64,000 nt of DNA from Basidiobolus meristosporus CBS 931.73. Its lineage: Eukaryota > Fungi > Basidiobolomycota. Of this stretch, positions 45,831-56,286 are shown in pieces. Made by a program: the position numbers and the translations under genes. The notes under the pieces are model-generated. The model ran no database searches, was not told where the DNA came from, and was given only the letters and a program-made list of their open reading frames with translations. Location: assembly GCA_002104905.1 (NCBI GenBank), contig MCFE01000495.1, positions 1-64,000 of the forward strand, read 5' to 3'. How positions within the stretch are numbered: position 1 is the stretch's first letter; the number at the start of each line of letters is the position of its first letter.

Positions 45831-47222
45831 TCATGGCTCGATGAGCCACGGATATGCATCAACCAAAGTGGGTTTAGGAATCTGACCTAAACTTTGATCA
45901 AGCAGGTGGATCAAGGATTCGATCTCGTTGATCTCCATGTCGTGGTTTTCATTCCAACTTTCCGCCATGTAGACGAGATAATTTTGCTCCAGCAGATGGC
46001 TCTGCTCCCAGAAGCAGCTCTGAAAACGCTTCACCGGCATGAACTCCAGGATAAGAGTGTTGGCGGAGGCGAAGCGACCGTTGTGCAGGGCGGAACCGTG
46101 GGGCGCAATGATGGCCCTCACGTTGCGGGAGAAGTATTCGGCAATCTCTTGGACGCTGGTGTAGTTCCGACGATCAAAGAGCACCAGCTGCTCCCCCAAG
46201 CCTCGCCTACGTAGTAACCCCTCCAACTCGTGCAGGAGTTTTTCCTCGTTCATGATTCTTCGGCCGCTGTTGGCGACGTCTCCATAGCTTCTGGACATGT
46301 ACAACACGACCTTTCGCTCGGATAGTGGTACCTTGTGAATATCCACACCCATCATTTCGGAGACCCGCTGAGTCGTGTACGGGTGGATCAACGGTGCTCT
46401 GCACGAGAAGATGAGGGTCTTCGCTGACTGCGCCTGTGTGATGCCCGGTTGGTAGTGATGATGATTTTTGACTCCCATCAAATTGTACATCTCGTCGACG
46501 AACGGAGAATTGGGTTTCCTGCCCGAGAGTACCGTGGCGTTGTCACGTGTCTCTTGATCCATTGCAAACAAAGATTGAGTCCAGACGACGGTGACTCTGT
46601 CTAGGAAGTGCTGCCAGCTCCAGGAGTCCGGGGAGGTTGCAACCACCAGGGTCTCGTGATCGTACTGTTGCTTTGCTTCACTTGACTTGGGATTCTCCAG
46701 GAAAGACTGGTGCGAAGCTCCAAAGCTCATGCAGGCTAGTGAACTCCAATCATCGGGGGGTGGGGACCCGGTGTACTGGGTGTTGCTAAAGACTAGATTT
46801 TGGGCGTTTGTGGTGGGGTAGTCGGCCCATTCCTTATCGTTACTCACCCTCATCCTATCCAGGTCGGCCACCGCATCTAACCATAGCGTTTTCTGCTGCT
46901 CAGAAATAAAGCGAGGGACCCTGAGACGAAACGACCTGTAAATCAATTCCTGGGCTTTAATCAGATTGGAGTCGGGCGTACGCTTTTGGATACACGGCGC
47001 AGAGTTTCTGTGTAGGCCATCAACACACTCATCAAGTATCAATGGGATCCAAGCGTCCGAATTTAAGCCAGAGTGATGGCTTCGTGAGGATGAGGGGCTG
47101 GCATATCTCCCGCCATTGGGTAGGATTGTGGTGCTGAAGGGCTCTCTACTCAGGGTGAAGTAAAGAACCACTGACGCCACCATCAGTAGTGGTATCGCAA
47201 GCTTTAACCGTCTTGGTGCCAT
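45831..47222 (-). CDS. Glycosyltransferase family 61 (DUF563)-like type II membrane protein, about 463 aa
   Basis: N-terminal anchor MAPRRLKLAIPLLMVASVVLYF. C-terminal VLYMSR and IIAPHGSALHNGRF...LILEFMP match the GT61 pattern. Confidence 0.8.
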   Translation of the reverse strand: MAPRRLKLAIPLLMVASVVLYFTLSREPFSTTILPNGGRYASPSSSRSHHSGLNSDAWIPLILDECVDGLHRNSAPCIQKRTPDSNLIKAQELIYRSFRLRVPRFISEQQKTLWLDAVADLDRMRVSNDKEWADYPTTNAQNLVFSNTQYTGSPPPDDWSSLACMSFGASHQSFLENPKSSEAKQQYDHETLVVATSPDSWSWQHFLDRVTVVWTQSLFAMDQETRDNATVLSGRKPNSPFVDEMYNLMGVKNHHHYQPGITQAQSAKTLIFSCRAPLIHPYTTQRVSEMMGVDIHKVPLSERKVVLYMSRSYGDVANSGRRIMNEEKLLHELEGLLRRRGLGEQLVLFDRRNYTSVQEIAEYFSRNVRAIIAPHGSALHNGRFASANTLILEFMPVKRFQSCFWEQSHLLEQNYLVYMAESWNENHDMEINEIESLIHLLDQSLGQIPKPTLVDAYPWLIEP

Positions 47223-47800: not shown

Positions 47801-48475
47801 CTAGTACTTGTATTTGCCATTACCATTACCATTGCCACTATAGTCATCGTAGTCACCTCCACCACCACCACCGCCATACTTCTTACCATGACCATTGCCG
47901 TCATAATCGTCGTAGTCACCGCCACCACCACCACCACCACCGTACTTCTTACCATGACCGTTGCCATCGTAGTCATCATAGTCACCGCCACCACCACCGC
48001 CATACTTCTTGCCGCGGCCATGACCGTCATAGTCGTCGTAGTCACCACCGCCACCACCACCATACTTCTTTCCTTTACCATGGCCATCATAGTCGTCATC
48101 ATAATCGCCGTCGCCACCACCACCGCCATACTTCTTTCCATGGCCATTGCCATCGTAGTCATCGTCGTAGTCACCACCACCACCACCGCCACCATACTTC
48201 TTTCCTTTACCATGGCCATCATAATCATCGTCGTAATCGCCACCACCACCACCGCCATATTTCTTTCCACGGCCGTTGCCGTCGTAGTCGTCGTCGTAGT
48301 CACCACCACCACCGCCGCCGCCATATTTCTTTCCATGGCCATTGCCATTGCCATCATAGTCATCATAGTCACCCACGCCTTTGTAGCCTGGGTCGTAAGA
48401 GCGTTCCATGACTGTAGCGTTGATGGCCAATGCAGCCGAGAGAACAACAAGAAGAGTAGCGCTGGAGTACTTCAT
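47801..48475 (-). CDS. Secreted Gly/Asp/Tyr/Lys repeat protein, copy A (224 aa, 8 KKY repeats)
   Basis: MKYSSATLLVVLSAALAINA signal peptide; repeats DYDD(D)YDG(N/H)G(H/K/R)GKKYGn; ends GKYKY. TATA-like TATATATA upstream; AATAAA downstream. Confidence 0.9.
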   Translation of the reverse strand: MKYSSATLLVVLSAALAINATVMERSYDPGYKGVGDYDDYDGNGNGHGKKYGGGGGGGDYDDDYDGNGRGKKYGGGGGGDYDDDYDGHGKGKKYGGGGGGGDYDDDYDGNGHGKKYGGGGGDGDYDDDYDGHGKGKKYGGGGGGDYDDYDGHGRGKKYGGGGGGDYDDYDGNGHGKKYGGGGGGGGDYDDYDGNGHGKKYGGGGGGGDYDDYSGNGNGNGKYKY

Positions 48476-48487
48476 ATTGAAAGCGTT

Positions 48488-48891
48488 GGAATGTCTTGCC
48501 ACAAGTAGCTATGAGGGATATATATACTATGGCCTGGATGTAGATCCATCCAGTGTAAGCTCCCCTTTGTGTGCAGTATCCTGCATTTCGAAGTGCTGGA
48601 GGCGTGATCGATCAGGATGGTACAGCTGGACAGGTTTCTTCAAATAAACCTTAACAAACACCTGAGTAGATGCTGAGAACCAATGAAGCTGTTAGGGGTG
48701 AGGAGTGTGGACCAAAACCCCATCGTCAGATTTGGTTGAAGTAACCTGTCCAGCTGTACCACCCTGATCGATCACGCCTCCAGCACTTCGAAATGCAGGA
48801 TACTGCACACAAAGGGGAGCTTACACTGGATGGATCTACATCCAGGCCATAGTATATATATCCCTCATAGCTACTTGTGGCAAGACATTCC
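48488..48891. repeat. Head-to-head palindrome: 155-bp promoter arms around the 100-bp segment X (48640-48739)
   Basis: 48488-48642 is the reverse complement of 48737-48891 with about 2 mismatches. Confidence 0.95.
48851..48862 (+). promoter_or_regulatory. TATA-like element of copy B (mirrored for A near 48517-48528; repeated for C near 49887-49898)
   Basis: AGTATATATATC about 45 bp upstream of the ATG, conserved in three copies. Confidence 0.55.
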
Positions 48892-48906
48892 GATTACTTC
48901 TCTAAC

Positions 48907-49497
48907 ATGAAATACTCCAGTGCCACTCTTCTTGTTGTTCTCTCGGCTGCATTGGCCATCAACGCCACAGTCATGGAACGCTCCTACGACCCAGGCTACA
49001 AAGGCGTGGGCGACTACGATGACTATGATGGCAATGGCAATGGCCATGGAAAGAAATATGGCGGTGGTGGTCGTGGTGGTGACTACGACGACGACTACGA
49101 CGGCAACGGCCGTGGAAAGAAATATGGCGGCGGTGGTGGTGGCGATTACGACGATGACTATGACGGCCATGGTAAAGGAAAGAAGTATGGTGGTGGTGAT
49201 GACTATGACGATGACTACGATGGCCATGGTAAAGGAAAGAAGTATGGCGGTGGTGATGACTACGACGATGACTACGATGGCAATGGCCATGGAAAGAAAT
49301 ATGGTGGTGGTGGTGGCGGTGGAGATTACGATGACGATTATGATGGCCACGGCCGTGGAAAGAAGTATGGTGGTGGCGGCGGTGGTGACTACGACGACTA
49401 TGACGGTCATGGCCGCGGCAAGAAGTATGGTGGTGGTGGTGGCGGTGACTATGATGACTACGATGGCAATGGCCACGCCGGAAAATACAAGTATTAG
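48907..49497 (+). CDS. Secreted Gly/Asp/Tyr/Lys repeat protein, copy B (196 aa, 7 KKY repeats)
   Basis: Same architecture as copy A. ATG at 48907, TAG at 49495-49497. Confidence 0.9.
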   Translation: MKYSSATLLVVLSAALAINATVMERSYDPGYKGVGDYDDYDGNGNGHGKKYGGGGRGGDYDDDYDGNGRGKKYGGGGGGDYDDDYDGHGKGKKYGGGDDYDDDYDGHGKGKKYGGGDDYDDDYDGNGHGKKYGGGGGGGDYDDDYDGHGRGKKYGGGGGGDYDDYDGHGRGKKYGGGGGGDYDDYDGNGHAGKYKY

Positions 49498-49675
49498 TGG
49501 TAGACCTGATTCCTGCGCTATAGATACTAGAACAACTCTACTATACCCAATAAACGCTGTTTACCCTATCATATCTATTGAAAGATCACTCTTATTGTGA
49601 ATTCTGAAGAGTGGCTCAAACAAGTGTAAATAACAATCAGAATCGGGTGATCCGATCGACGCTTCCATGTGAACG

Positions 49676-49775
49676 TCAAACAAACCTTAACAAACATCTG
49701 AGTAGATGCTGAGAACCAATGAAGCTGTTAGGGGTGAGGAGTGTGGATCAAAACCCCATCGTTAGATTTGGTTGA
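49676..49775 (+). repeat. Segment X, middle copy, between the terminator of B and the promoter of C
   Basis: Bounded by TCAAACAAACCTTAAC ... GTTAGATTTGGTTGA (imperfect inverted repeat). Confidence 0.9.
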
Positions 49776-49942
49776 AGTAACCTGTCCAGCCGTACCACCC
49801 TGATCGATCACGCCTCCAGCACTTCGAAATGCAGGATACTGCACACAAAGGGGAGCTTACACTGGATGGATCTACATCCAGGCCATAGTATATATATCCC
49901 TCATAGCTACTTGTGGCAAGACATTCCAATCACTTCTCCAAC

Positions 49943-50659
49943 ATGAAATACTCCAGTGCCACTCTTCTTGTTGTTCTCTCGGCTGCTTTGGCCATCAACG
50001 CCACAGTCATGGAACGCTCTTACGACCCAGGCTACAAAGGCGTGGGTGACTACGATGACTATGATGGCAATGGCAATGGCCATGGAAAGAAATATGGCGG
50101 TGGTGGTGGTGGTGGCGATTATGACGATGACTACGATGGCCATGGTAAAGGAAAGAAATATGGCGGTGGTGGTGGTGGCGATTACGACGATGACTATGAC
50201 GGCCATGGTAAAGGAAAGAAGTATGGCGGTGGTGATGACTACGACGATGACTACGATGGCAATGGCCATGGAAAGAAATATGGTGGTGGTGGTGGCGGTG
50301 GAGATTACGATGACGATTATGATGGCCACGGCCGTGGAAAGAAGTATGGTGGTGGTGGCGGTGGTGACTACGACGACTATGACGGTCATGGCCGCGGCAA
50401 GAAGTATGGCGGTGGTGGTGGCGGTGACTATGATGACTACGATGGCAACGGTCATGGTAAGAAGTACGGTGGTGGTGGCGGCGGTGATCATGATGACTAC
50501 GATGGCAATGGTCACGGCAAGAAGTATGGCGGTGGTGGTGGCGGTGACTACGATGACTACGATGGCAATGGCCATGGTAAGAAGTACGGTGGTGGTGGTG
50601 GTAGTGGTGACTATGATGATTACGACGGCAATGGCAACGGCGGAAAATACAAGTATTAG
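49943..50659 (+). CDS. Secreted Gly/Asp/Tyr/Lys repeat protein, copy C (238 aa, 9 KKY repeats)
   Basis: Same architecture. Start codon lies 1036 bp downstream of copy B. Confidence 0.9.
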   Translation: MKYSSATLLVVLSAALAINATVMERSYDPGYKGVGDYDDYDGNGNGHGKKYGGGGGGGDYDDDYDGHGKGKKYGGGGGGDYDDDYDGHGKGKKYGGGDDYDDDYDGNGHGKKYGGGGGGGDYDDDYDGHGRGKKYGGGGGGDYDDYDGHGRGKKYGGGGGGDYDDYDGNGHGKKYGGGGGGDHDDYDGNGHGKKYGGGGGGDYDDYDGNGHGKKYGGGGGSGDYDDYDGNGNGGKYKY

Positions 50660-51115
50660 TGGTAGACCTGATTCCTGCGCTATAGATACTAGAACAACTC
50701 TACTATACCCAATAAACGCTGTTTACCCTATCATATCTATTGAAAGATCACCCTTACTGTGAATTCTGAAGAGTGGCTCAAACAAGTGTAAATAACAATC
50801 AGAATCGGTTGGTCCGATCGACGCTCCGATGTGAACACCAACCAAACCTAACGATGGGGTTTTGGTCCACACTCCCCACCCCTAACAGCTTCATTGGTTC
50901 TCAGCATCTACTCAGATGTTTGTTAAGGTTTGTTTGACGTTCACATGGAAGCGTCGATCGGATCACCCGATTCTGATTGTTATTTACACTTGTTTGAGCC
51001 ACTCTTCAGAATTCACAATAAGAGTGATCTTTCAATAGATATGATAGGGTAAACAGAGTTTATTGGGTATAGTAGAGTTGTTCTAGTATCTATAGTGCAG
51101 GAATCAGGTCTACCA
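50660..51115. repeat. Tail-to-tail palindrome: about 178-bp terminator arms around inverted segment X (50838-50937)
   Basis: 50660-50837 is the reverse complement of 50938-51115 with several mismatches. The spacer is X in reverse orientation. Confidence 0.93.
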
Positions 51116-51841
51116 CTAATACTTGTATTTTCCGCCGTTGCCATTGCCGTCGTAATCATCATAGTCACCACCACCACCACCACCACCGTACTTCTTACCA
51201 TGGCCATTGCCATCGTAGTCATCGTAGTCACCGCCACCACCACCGCCATACTTCTTGCCGTGACCATTGCCATCGTAGTCATCATAATCACCGCCGCCAC
51301 CACCACCGTACTTCTTACCATGACCGTTGCCATCGTAGTCATCATAGTCACCGCCACCACCACCGCCATACTTCTTGCCGCGGCCATGACCGTCATAGTC
51401 GTCGTAGTCACCACCGCCACCACCACCATACTTCTTTCCTTACGCATGGCCATCATAGTCGTCATCATAATCGCCGTCGCCACCACCACCGCCATACTTC
51501 TTTCCATGGCCATTGCCATCGTAGTCATCGTCGTAGTCACCACCACCACCACCGCCACCATACTTCTTTCCTTTACCATGACCGTCATAGTCGTCATCGT
51601 AATCGCCACCACCACCACCGCCATATTTCTTTCCACGGCCGTTGCCATCGTAGTCATCGTCGTAGTCACCACCATCACCGCCGCCGCCATATTTCTTTCC
51701 ATGGCCATTGCCATTGCCATCATAGTCATCGTAGTCACCCACGCCTTTGTAGCCTGGGTCGTAAGAGCGTTCCATGACTGTAGCGTTGACGGCCAAAGCA
51801 GCCGAGAGAACAACAAGAAGAGTAGCGCTGGAGTACTTCAT
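51116..51841 (-). pseudogene. Repeat-protein copy D with an in-frame premature TAA at codon 134 (truncated gene or pseudogene)
   Basis: GGT AAA of paralog A reads GCG TAA at 51440-51445. The frame continues through further repeats to GKYKY-TAG at 51116. Confidence 0.75.
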
Positions 51842-52168
51842 ATTGAAAGAGTTGGAATGATTAGCTAGAAACGGTCACCGCCGGCTTATATATTGTGTAT
51901 GGATGCGGATGGATGCGGATGGATGCGGATGAATGCGGCGAACTCATTCAAACCACATGTAAAGCGAGCAAAATTTAAGGGTGCCAAACATGGCTCAAAT
52001 TACGGTGATCTTGTAGGAGTGCAGCATGATCCGCTGTATGCACCATGTTGATCGAAAAATGCTGTCCCATGCAGTATTGTTAGTCCTATACAGTGACACC
52101 ATAGTAGGTGCAGATCTCCCTGAGTCTGCGATGTGAATCAAATCCAGTGGAGATCTGACTCCAGCATT

Positions 52169-52328: not shown

Positions 52329-52787
52329 CTAGTTAGTACATTGAGTGAAGTTCCCTTTGGGGTCTGGTGTGAGTTTGAAGACGGGGGTTTGGGAGTAACA
52401 GTCCATATCTTGGCCGGGAGTGCTGGAGTAAACCCTGATATAGTACTCGCCATCACGTTGCAGGCAGAGTGGCACGCTGAGTGTGAAGGGGAGCTGGCCG
52501 TTGGAGACGCTTACCCCTGGATAGCTGCGGTACTGTGTATGCAGGAATTGGTGATCCTTCGCGCTAAACAGGTCCACCTCTCGAATGGTGGTCACTTGGG
52601 AGTCGGCAGAGGTCCATTTCACAATGACTTTATCGTTGGAAGAGAACGTCGATGGCTTCGGACCAGCAGCGTGCTCAAGAGAGCTGACCGCCCAACCGTT
52701 GCATTGGCTAGGCGACCCAACAGGAGCAGCAGTCGCGCCAGCGGCAAGAGCAATGGCAATGGGAATGGATGCTGTAGAGAATTTCAT
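52329..52787 (-). CDS. Small secreted protein, 152 aa, Kre9/Knh1 N-terminal (Ig-like) domain-like, 4 Cys
   Basis: Signal peptide MKFSTASIPIAIALAAGATA; beta-rich pattern VIVKWTS...EVDLF...FTLSVP...DGEYYIRVYS...CYSQTPVFKL. No GPI tail. Confidence 0.75.
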   Translation of the reverse strand: MKFSTASIPIAIALAAGATAAPVGSPSQCNGWAVSSLEHAAGPKPSTFSSNDKVIVKWTSADSQVTTIREVDLFSAKDHQFLHTQYRSYPGVSVSNGQLPFTLSVPLCLQRDGEYYIRVYSSTPGQDMDCYSQTPVFKLTPDPKGNFTQCTN

Positions 52788-54833: not shown

Positions 54834-56286
54834 TCATTGCAAGGGAAGTTGTCTTGGTGAACCGATGACAAATCCATTTGGCTCGTGGCAAATGGTTGCA
54901 GGATTTGCTAATTTTGCTTCAGGGTCTTCGCAACTTGTGGAGCGGACGCCAATCACTTCTTGGTCACTGTAGACATTCCGCATCCAGTGAAATTGATTAA
55001 AGCCTGGGTGGACCATGTTCACAACATCCTCCAGGGCAGCATCCGGCATGGCCGTAGCATAGGTACCCCATCCGGAGGACCGGTCTTCACGGAAGATTGC
55101 CTTGTTCTTGATAAAATTGAGCTGTGTGTCGGACTCATTCAAACGGTAGAAATTTAGAACGTTCTCAGCAGTTAGACTACGGCCGAAGGTAAGACGACCG
55201 AACCTGCCGAGGTCATGGCTAGTTTCATCGATTAGAATGTCCACATCTTTAAGGACCTCACGAGCATCAGCTATCTTATATGCAAATAAACTAGCTGTCC
55301 GTTCAGGATGGTAGACGTCCGTAGGCTCCATATCAGTAAAACTGAGGCTACCCTCAGCCATTCTCTGCAGATCCACTGCCGCATAACCATACGTAGTCCT
55401 GCTGTTGTTTTTCTGAGTAGCATGAATGGAGTCTATATCGATCATGGTAGCACCAGCATCAGTTGTCAGGTTTACTTTGTATGGGGTCATAGAGATTTCG
55501 ATATAGGTTTCACCGTTTCTTTCGAAAACCCCCGTCCAAGCAATCACTGGTTTAGGATACTTAGCGTTCGTTGCAGCCCTCTCCTTGATACAATGGTAGT
55601 TGTGCATCATATCTCTGGCGATCACAGCAGCCTTCTCCTCCAAGTTGAAGAAGGTTGCGTAAAATCTCAACCATTCGGCCGATTCCTGAACATCCGAGTC
55701 TTCCGAACGCTGAGTCTGGATGGTCTTTTCTTCAAAACTGGATTCGTCGAAGGTTGGATAATCGCCCACTGTGTTCATCGAGTAGAGAAAGTCTTGAGGA
55801 AATGAAGAGATCTTTCTATCGCGATAGAGCCTTTGTATGCAGGAAGATGGAGCGGAATGCGCCCACCCAACATACGCAATCCGATCACGTAGTCCAAACA
55901 TCTAAACGAAGTAACTCAGCTGAAATCCAGCGGTGGTAGAGGACGTATCAGCACTCACCTCAATAAATGGGAGTGCGCTTAAGCTCTTCACGCCTATTCC
56001 GTTGAGCGGGACTTCGAAGAAAAGATCGCGTGGGCTTGCCGGCTGTGGCTTCGGAGTGTCACGTTGGTACAGGACAAAAGTTTGGTTGGTGATTCTGTTA
56101 TGTACATATTTATGGTCCGAATGATATTCGACTGTGAACACTGTATCAAGGGAAATGTCAAAGGACAGGTCAGAAAGTGTTTCGGCGGGACTCTTTACCT
56201 TGTGTGCTGTTACGATCGACTTGCTTGGCAAGAGAGCCCAGGAACCCGCAGGCCAGCAGTAAAGTGACAACGCTGAGCAGGGACAT
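54834..56286 (-). CDS. Secreted substrate-binding protein, BtuF/FhuD-type fold, CBA1-like, 445 aa; exons 56286-56199, 56140-55959, 55901-54834
   Basis: Two GT-AG introns (58 and 57 nt) join signal peptide MSLLSVVTLLLACGFLGSLA to FTVEYHSDHKYVHNRITNQTFVLYQRDTPKP, FEVPLNGIGV...LPFIEMFGL and SAEWLRFYATFFNLEEKA. Confidence 0.8.

Follow-up and report, generated by a model that had tools for sequence, protein, structure and literature searches.

Does a cluster of genes that encode chains of glycine, aspartate, tyrosine and lysine supply an extracellular material, or a precursor from which many small peptides are cut? The question is raised by a locus of Basidiobolus meristosporus CBS 931.73, a frog- and lizard-gut fungus, at positions 47801-51841 of contig MCFE01000495.1 (assembly GCA_002104905.1). 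The DNA analyzed, referred to below as the window, comprises the first 64,000 nucleotides of this contig, and its coordinates are those of the database record. The locus carries four intronless paralogues, A to D, in the order A< >B >C <D, where arrowheads give the direction of transcription. These are real genes under purifying selection and belong to a family found only in Basidiobolus. We tentatively prefer the view that their products act as intact, cross-linkable proteins.

Four repeat genes under purifying selection

Gene A (47801-48475, reverse strand) encodes 224 amino acids, consisting of a signal peptide, a leader, nine repeat units and a GKYKY end. Gene B (48907-49497, forward strand) encodes 196 amino acids with eight units, and gene C (49943-50659, forward strand) 238 amino acids with ten. 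Gene D lies on the reverse strand and is interrupted. Its 5' part (51440-51841) comprises 133 codons for the signal peptide, the leader and 4.5 units, and ends at an in-frame TAA (51440-51442) inside the fifth unit; the same frame continues past the TAA through a 3' remainder (51116-51439) with five further units, GKYKY and a stop codon at 51116-51118. The true start of all four is the ATG of MKYSS, and the longer GTG-start frames in the mechanical list of open reading frames (ORFs) are unnecessary.

The ORFs and their translations confirmed what a first-pass annotation of the window had described: four reading frames with a signal peptide, a common leader, units of acidic, basic, Tyr and Gly segments, and a GKYKY end. 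Its count of seven to nine repeats was slightly low, as splitting at KK gives 9, 8, 10 and 10 units in A, B, C and D, with D counted through the TAA. The leader common to A-D is MKYSSATLLVVLSAALA(I/V)NATVMERSYDPGYKGVG. The unit of these proteins, which form the long branch of the family, is Y-Gly(3-8)-DYDD(D)YD-G(N/H)G(H/K/R)G-KK and spans 15-25 amino acids. Residues after the leader were G 268, D 150, Y 97, K 69, H 28, N 26, R 9, S 2 and A 2, with nothing else, in agreement with the first-pass claim of essentially seven residue types (G, D, Y, K, H, N and R) apart from the few serines and alanines. Expressed as composition, the mature long proteins are 40% G, 20% D, 15% Y, 10% K and 3-5% H. 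Their computed isoelectric point (pI) is 4.4, and at pH 7 they carry a computed net charge of -17 to -20, and at pH 3 one of about +27. The description of these proteins as block-charged also held, with a charge-patterning index kappa of 0.46 compared with 0.19 +/- 0.03 in shuffled sequences.

The secretion-type N-terminus seen in the first pass was conserved in 44 of 44 family ORFs and consists of MK, a hydrophobic core of 14 residues and a motif of the ALA/INA cleavage type. The signal peptide was judged by inspection, without a signal-peptide predictor. A single-sequence AlphaFold2 (AF2) model contained one helix, at residues 5-21 in the signal peptide, and the remainder had a predicted local distance difference test score (pLDDT) of about 40. 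We infer that the products of A-D are exported, and they are predicted to be intrinsically disordered block polyampholytes.

Residue choice within the units was strict. Over both branches of the family, 516 Asp stood against 6 Glu, and 287 Tyr against a single Phe and no Trp; Tyr occurred in the context DYD 72 times and KYG 33 times. The retention of Tyr over Phe or Trp and of Asp over Glu argues for a role of the Tyr hydroxyl, beyond charge or aromaticity. All 33 basic pairs of the long branch were KK followed by Tyr, with Arg in 0 of the 66 positions. Every one of the 66 KK codons was AAG or AAA, a single transition away from Arg, and yet Arg does occur two residues upstream, in GRGKK.

Sulfation of Tyr in the DYDDDYD motif, considered in view of the consensus of sulfation sites, is left as speculation. 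At the codon level, GGG was absent from the 238 Gly codons of A-C (GGT 125, GGC 92, GGA 21); the neighboring glycosyltransferase 61 (GT61) gene had GGG at 4 of 18. This absence may be due to avoidance of runs of G, slippage during replication or poor decoding of poly-Gly tracts.

Selection on the encoded peptide was apparent from several comparisons. The regularity of the repeats goes well past what chance would give. Units were spaced by 57-66 nt or by 123 nt, in each case a multiple of three, as was every alignment gap or indel among the paralogues. By the Nei-Gojobori method, the ratio of nonsynonymous to synonymous substitution rates (dN/dS) was 0.05 in comparisons of A, B and C, and 0.11 for 15 paralogues of the short branch, within a family range of 0.05-0.13. 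When the signal peptide and leader were compared between the long and short branches, dN/dS was 0.08 and synonymous sites were saturated (dS 1.36). Seventeen identical DYDDDYDG cores were encoded by nine synonymous versions that were 83-85% identical in DNA; it is therefore the peptide, and not the DNA repeat, that is conserved. The repeats of A-D leave all six frames open, and the described frame alone has a start codon with a signal peptide, ends at a conserved stop and varies at third positions. Long and short genes have in common a TATA box, 41-55 nt upstream of the ATG, and an element of the CAAATCA type, in upstream regions that are otherwise unalignable. Because spacings and gaps are multiples of a codon, dN/dS is low, identical cores have synonymous versions, both branches have TATA promoters and only one frame has a start, signal peptide and stop, we conclude that A-D are real genes under purifying selection.

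A Basidiobolus family with a long and a short branch

The first-pass annotation had spoken of a four-gene family. Four is correct for the window and an understatement for the genome, as at least 40 further ORFs of a short branch were found in the same assembly, bringing the family to 44 ORFs with A-D. The short branch forms tandem arrays on four other contigs, with 12 ORFs on MCFE01000056 (L001), 5 on MCFE01000314 (L002), 13 on MCFE01001009 (L008) and 10 on MCFE01001205 (L009). Its members are 110-129 amino acids long, contain four units and finish in GDGYDDY; RRKK, RRRR, RGKK and RKK are among their basic runs. The final two basic residues were RR in 17 of 62 runs and KR in 5 of 62, and Tyr came next in 44 of 62. 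Two short-branch copies were truncated or frameshifted.

L001, L008 and L009 carry nearly the same array, flanked on two of the three by the same pyridine-nucleotide-disulfide oxidoreductase/rhodanese gene; the three could represent haplotypes, or duplicates that the CBS 931.73 assembly did not collapse. Adjoining the 12-gene array, at L001 15149-15823, lies an ORF for a 224-residue secreted, very acidic protein rich in Gly, His, Asp, Tyr and Glu and with no Pfam match; beside it is a secreted CAP-domain (PR-1-like) gene at L001 14278-14757.

Word-index protein searches returned CBS 931.73 proteins only, both with a short query and with C, which found just four proteins, all with the same signal peptide and leader. 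A profile built from both branches was run against 1.84 billion representative proteins and returned five CBS 931.73 proteins, one protein of B. ranarum and one spurious match. The B. ranarum protein (GCA_040143965.1, L005 7265-7483) has 72 amino acids (E 3e-5), and its likeness to the family is confined to the signal peptide, the leader (AVLERAYNTKDYAGTG) and a tail rich in Gly. From this limited match, the leader appears to be older, and the DYDDDYD and basic units to have been invented in the B. meristosporus lineage.

Two candidates were not counted as members. P0009 was spurious, with a YDDQFSG repeat. P0010, among the five CBS 931.73 proteins, showed weak, compositional similarity (profile E 8e-4; pairwise BLASTP E 0.007 over 19 residues). 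Encoded at L003 6001-6645 (MCFE01000224), it is a single-copy, 214-residue secreted protein with a leader-like YDPSYTGYG, GDYDDDYD blocks and stretches rich in His and Lys; its C-terminal part has no repeats and contains two Cys. P0010 may be distantly related or ancestral to the family, or may resemble it in composition only.

In domain and structure databases the family had no counterpart. For A, B and C, Pfam-A returned no family at E up to 1, a PDB sequence search with the family gave 0 matches, and the best ESM Atlas score, 0.80, was at chance level. The family is thus found only in Basidiobolus and is amplified in arrays, with A-D as its long branch.

Previous researchers have cataloged proteins of this general kind. 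In a survey of 1,461 fungal genomes, Kex2-processed repeat proteins (KEPs) were defined by a signal peptide and at least three repeats of at least 8 amino acids (8-100) between KR, KK, RK or RR (PMC7329392). The survey names CBS 931.73 as the most KEP-rich strain surveyed, with 43 KEPs, and describes a type S-3 (#158) of seven proteins, from Basidiobolus only, with a profile rich in Tyr and multiple Asp; DUF3328 is given there as nearby for 0 of the 7 S-3 genes (PMC7329392). Type S-3 is probably the Gly-Asp-Tyr-Lys repeat family, as matched by taxon and residue profile and not by accession. The first-pass statement that no named family was recognizable therefore stands for Pfam, PDB and the ESM Atlas, and gives way in so far as the family is probably already in the KEP catalog as an uncharacterized type. 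As S-3 is listed there without characterization, no characterized family was matched. A search of the literature on the Basidiobolus secretome, transcriptome and locus tags found no paper on expression, processing or function of these genes.

Intact material or peptide precursor

Two functions had been proposed in the first pass, a glue or coat protein and a source of KK-cut peptides, and these remain the right two hypotheses. The sequence of A-D leans mildly toward the glue or coat, because only KK is used at the pair despite the Arg of GRGKK, the Gly spacer drifts between 3 and 8 residues, Phe does not stand in for Tyr and Glu does not stand in for Asp. The peptide reading keeps a share of the probability, since KK counts as a site by definition in the KEP literature, and RR and KR occur in the short branch. 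With somewhat less than even confidence, we prefer to regard A-D as an intact, secreted, cross-linkable block polyampholyte material.

As such a material, the protein would lose its signal peptide and leave the cell largely intact. The acidic DYDD(D)YD and basic G(H/K/R)GKKY blocks, set on Gly3-8 spacers, would attract each other within and between chains, and condensation by self-coacervation would occur near the pI of about 4.4, or once cations or partner polymers screen the net negative charge. Tyr and neighboring Lys or His would then be oxidized by tyrosinase or peroxidase, giving 3,4-dihydroxyphenylalanine (DOPA)-quinone or dityrosine links, and these links would turn the condensate into a cured, insoluble material outside the cell. 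The candidate sites would be the mucoid adhesive droplet of the capilliconidium and a layer of the spore or zygospore wall that survives gut passage. Basidiobolus capilliconidia do bear a terminal mucoid droplet (PMC3734969). An intact material would be consistent with the variable Gly spacers (3-8) and unit number (8-10), by analogy with structural repeat proteins, and with the strict use of Tyr rather than any aromatic residue and of Lys at the pair; the high gene dose fits a material made in bulk.

Known systems offer partial parallels. Trematode eggshell precursors are Tyr-rich with Gly neighbors, their Tyr is converted to DOPA-quinone that binds Lys, and the resulting shell resists digestion (PMC2758302). 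Like A-D, these precursors (P14, P19, P48 and vitelline protein B; PMC2758302) are secreted, low-complexity proteins rich in Gly, Tyr, Lys, Asp and His, with Tyr beside Gly and Lys as nucleophile, and they are made in bulk for a digestion-resistant shell in a host. A-D have the composition expected of eggshell and DOPA-adhesive proteins, namely a secretion-type N-terminus, Tyr with Gly neighbors, and Lys and His nucleophiles. The likeness is one of composition alone: the profile search, PDB sequences and Pfam gave no homology to a characterized eggshell or DOPA adhesive protein (the profile matched Basidiobolus only, plus the one spurious protein), and the charges of A-D, unlike those of the eggshell precursors, are in strict acidic and basic blocks and strongly acidic overall.

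A glycine-rich protein of tick cement phase-separates and ages (PMC11794139). It resembles A-D in being disordered and Gly-rich, with aromatic and cationic stickers (KKY and GHG in A-D) on flexible spacers (PMC11794139). By analogy, a liquid-to-solid transition is plausible for the A-D proteins. Further phase-separating adhesives are the mussel foot proteins, the sandcastle-worm cement proteins and the squid beak GHG-repeat proteins. All of these adhesives are animal proteins, and they are mostly basic or consist of two oppositely charged proteins, unlike A-D, which carry both charges in one chain. To our knowledge, phase-separating adhesive proteins have no characterized fungal counterpart.

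It is a bolder proposal, and in our opinion a rather unlikely one, that the family makes up the bulk of a bio-adhesive or spore coat of the fungus, comparable to mussel, sandcastle-worm and fluke-eggshell materials, with single-chain self-coacervation and Tyr/Lys/His curing into the capilliconidial droplet or a digestion-proof wall. We know of no fungal protein shown to work by self-coacervation and curing; no literature search was aimed at that point.

Several observations weigh against an intact cross-linked material. A-D have no wall anchor, as the GKYKY end lacks a hydrophobic tail of the glycosylphosphatidylinositol (GPI) type and the proteins lack both Cys and Pir-type repeats. The window showed neither an oxidase nor a cross-linking gene when its ORFs were compared with Pfam and neighboring genes were inspected. 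The proteins are net acidic, unlike most DOPA adhesives, which are basic. Members of the short branch have only about 100 mature residues, in four units with RR and KR pairs, and bear a closer likeness to a processed precursor. Strict invariance of the acidic core beside a variable basic run is a pattern also expected of a core peptide between cleavage sites. The published survey classes such proteins as KEPs (PMC7329392). Lastly, no sequencing-run assemblies with gene B or a short member were found, and the genome assembly alone carries them.

We consider it possible but doubtful that A-D are instead KEPs. A kexin-type or other basic-site protease in the Golgi would cut after each KK (RR, KR or KK in the short branch), and a Kex1-type carboxypeptidase would trim the basic residues, releasing many acidic peptides of 17-23 residues, Y-Gly(n)-DYDD(D)YDG(N/H)G(H/K/R)G, that could serve as a signal, a metal or surface binder or a substrate for Tyr modification. 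A basic pair does stand at every unit border and is followed by Tyr at all long-branch and most short-branch sites, the DYDDDYDG core is nearly invariant between a varying basic run and spacer, and the conserved leader could be a recognition or pro-segment. The long branch, with KK only, offers a canonical kexin site with Arg at P1 (KR or RR) at 0 of its 33 pairs, and S. cerevisiae Kex2, from work of the Fuller laboratory, reportedly has a strong requirement for Arg at P1, which counts against this reading. So does the record of fungal KEP cleavage: the cleavages shown in a second KEP paper are at RR, and KK was adopted by analogy with neuropeptide precursors (PMC9769878). Cleaved Kex2 sites favor acidic or small residues at P1', P2' and P4', unlike the Y-G-G-G that follows KK in A-D (PMC2515848). 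Released peptides would also have poly-Gly heads varying from 3 to 8 residues, which is odd for a specific ligand.

As to the published definition, A-D, with a signal peptide by inspection and 8-10 units of 15-25 amino acids bounded by KK, lie within it, and the S-3 profile fits the family (PMC7329392; PMC9769878). Known KEPs, among them type S-3 (#158), yeast alpha-factor precursors, Ustilago Rep1 and ustiloxin-type precursors, resemble A-D in having a signal peptide and many near-identical units bounded by dibasic sites, encoded by small, intronless and often duplicated genes. A-D differ in the exclusive use of KK in the long branch, the charge-balancing basic block and variable Gly spacer of each unit, and the lack of Ste13-type XA/XP dipeptides. 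They also differ in their neighborhood: comparison of window ORFs with Pfam found no DUF3328 (UstYa) or tyrosinase gene, and the called genes within +/-10 kb belong only to the BPSS1860/DUF3472, GT61, PAP2 and Yos1 families. DUF3328, with or without tyrosinase, near the precursor gene marks dikaritin-type (ustiloxin-class) peptides that are made by ribosomes and modified after translation (RiPPs), and the A-D locus thus lacks this mark.

The remaining explanations are less probable still. A soluble extracellular buffer of ions or metals, or a binder of mineral surfaces, is unlikely; here Ca2+ would be chelated, or calcium salts bound, by the Asp-Tyr blocks, the GHG/GNG and Lys blocks would hold Cu, Zn or Ni or attach to anionic surfaces, and His and Asp would give pH-switchable behavior along the gut. 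The preference for Asp over Glu, the conserved GHG motifs, the computed reversal of charge between pH 3 (about +27) and pH 7 (about -18), and the other secreted acidic Gly/His/Asp/Tyr proteins of this genome (L001 15149-15823 and P0010) are consistent with such a role, which is argued from composition and leaves the invariant Lys-Lys-Tyr and the exclusion of Phe at Tyr positions unexplained; Pfam and PDB showed no known metal-binding domain or structural match. Less probable again is a precursor of cationic, Gly/His/Lys/Tyr-rich antimicrobial peptides, in which the acidic blocks neutralize the cationic parts until fungal or host gut proteases release them. The gut holds bacterial competitors and abundant trypsin-like enzymes, and anionic pro-pieces occur in antimicrobial peptide precursors, to which the anionic/cationic alternation of A-D is similar. 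However, the acidic and basic blocks are not divided by any cleavage motif, the latter are just 5-7 residues long, the acidic part is the better conserved, and the whole protein is net acidic. The slightest chance of all is given to recently amplified low-complexity ORFs without a function of their own, either silent or by-products of a recombination-prone palindromic locus. The six open frames, the interruption of D, the two damaged short-branch copies, the inconsistent public annotation of the locus and the failure to find expression evidence would fit that explanation; the low dN/dS across branches with saturated synonymous divergence, the whole-codon indels, the synonymous variation beneath identical peptide cores and the conserved TATA promoters argue against it.

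Locus growth, annotation and implications

The divergent promoters of A and B lie in a head-to-head palindrome (48488-48891), whose arms (48488-48651 and 48728-48891) are 97% complementary and separated by 76 nt. The 3' halves of C and D form a tail-to-tail palindrome (50224-51551), with arms (50224-50849 and 50926-51551) that are 96% complementary and again separated by 76 nt. The TATA boxes are at 48516-48527 for A (reverse strand, about 41-52 nt upstream of the ATG), 48852-48863 for B and 49888-49899 for C (both forward strand), and 51883-51893 for D (reverse strand, of the TATATAAG type). A module of about 100 nt occurs at every junction: at 48640-48740, the head-to-head center of A and B; at 49676-49776, upstream of C; and, reversed, at 50838-50938, the tail-to-tail center of C and D. 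The common module and the exact 76-nt gap in both palindromes suggest that the locus grew by fold-back or inverted duplication around the module.

The GT61 gene lies at 45831-47183 (reverse strand). Downstream, on the reverse strand, are a gene for a small secreted protein with a weak Kre9/KNH-like match (52329-52787; E 0.02) and a periplasmic-binding-protein-like gene with a weak Peripla_BP_2 match (54834-56286). Window positions 1-40,000 are AT-rich (36-41% GC, about 38%), and the genes sit between about 40 kb and 62 kb, where GC is 45-54%. In B. ranarum the GT61-PAP2-Yos1 neighborhood is conserved; no family member was seen there, on a contig that stops 2.7 kb beyond GT61.

Public annotation models A (224 amino acids) and B (196 amino acids, at the same position) identically to the present ORFs. 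For C, it has an antisense model (49943-50680, reverse strand) of 246 amino acids, without Met and rich in Thr, Val, Ile and Ala, which is probably an error. For D (51116-51841), it has 226 amino acids, and treats 45 nt that include the TAA as a GT..AG 'intron' whose donor, GTGGCG, is weak. We rejected such an intron as a device of annotation: the only in-frame GT..AG intervals (30-117 nt) that span the TAA also remove part or all of at least one repeat unit, and the candidate intervals have a weak GTGG donor and no other visible splice signal. The public models of C and D look like artifacts of annotating a repeat with six open frames. Public annotation thus mis-models the family: for one copy it takes the antisense strand, and for another it splices out a stop codon.

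The family shows strong amplification of small secreted-protein genes in the CBS 931.73 genome. If its products are cut, the fungus would release very large amounts of one acidic, Tyr-rich peptide, and the family would be a test of the use of KK sites in fungi, which KEP surveys assume. A-D have no characterized homologue, and the combination of acidic, basic and Gly segments in a single chain is unusual. If the proteins remain intact, they would represent a compact and genetically simple fungal design, built from about seven amino acids with both charges in one chain and available in a culturable organism. Such a self-condensing, cross-linkable material would be relevant to adhesion, phase separation and the survival of spores in the gut.

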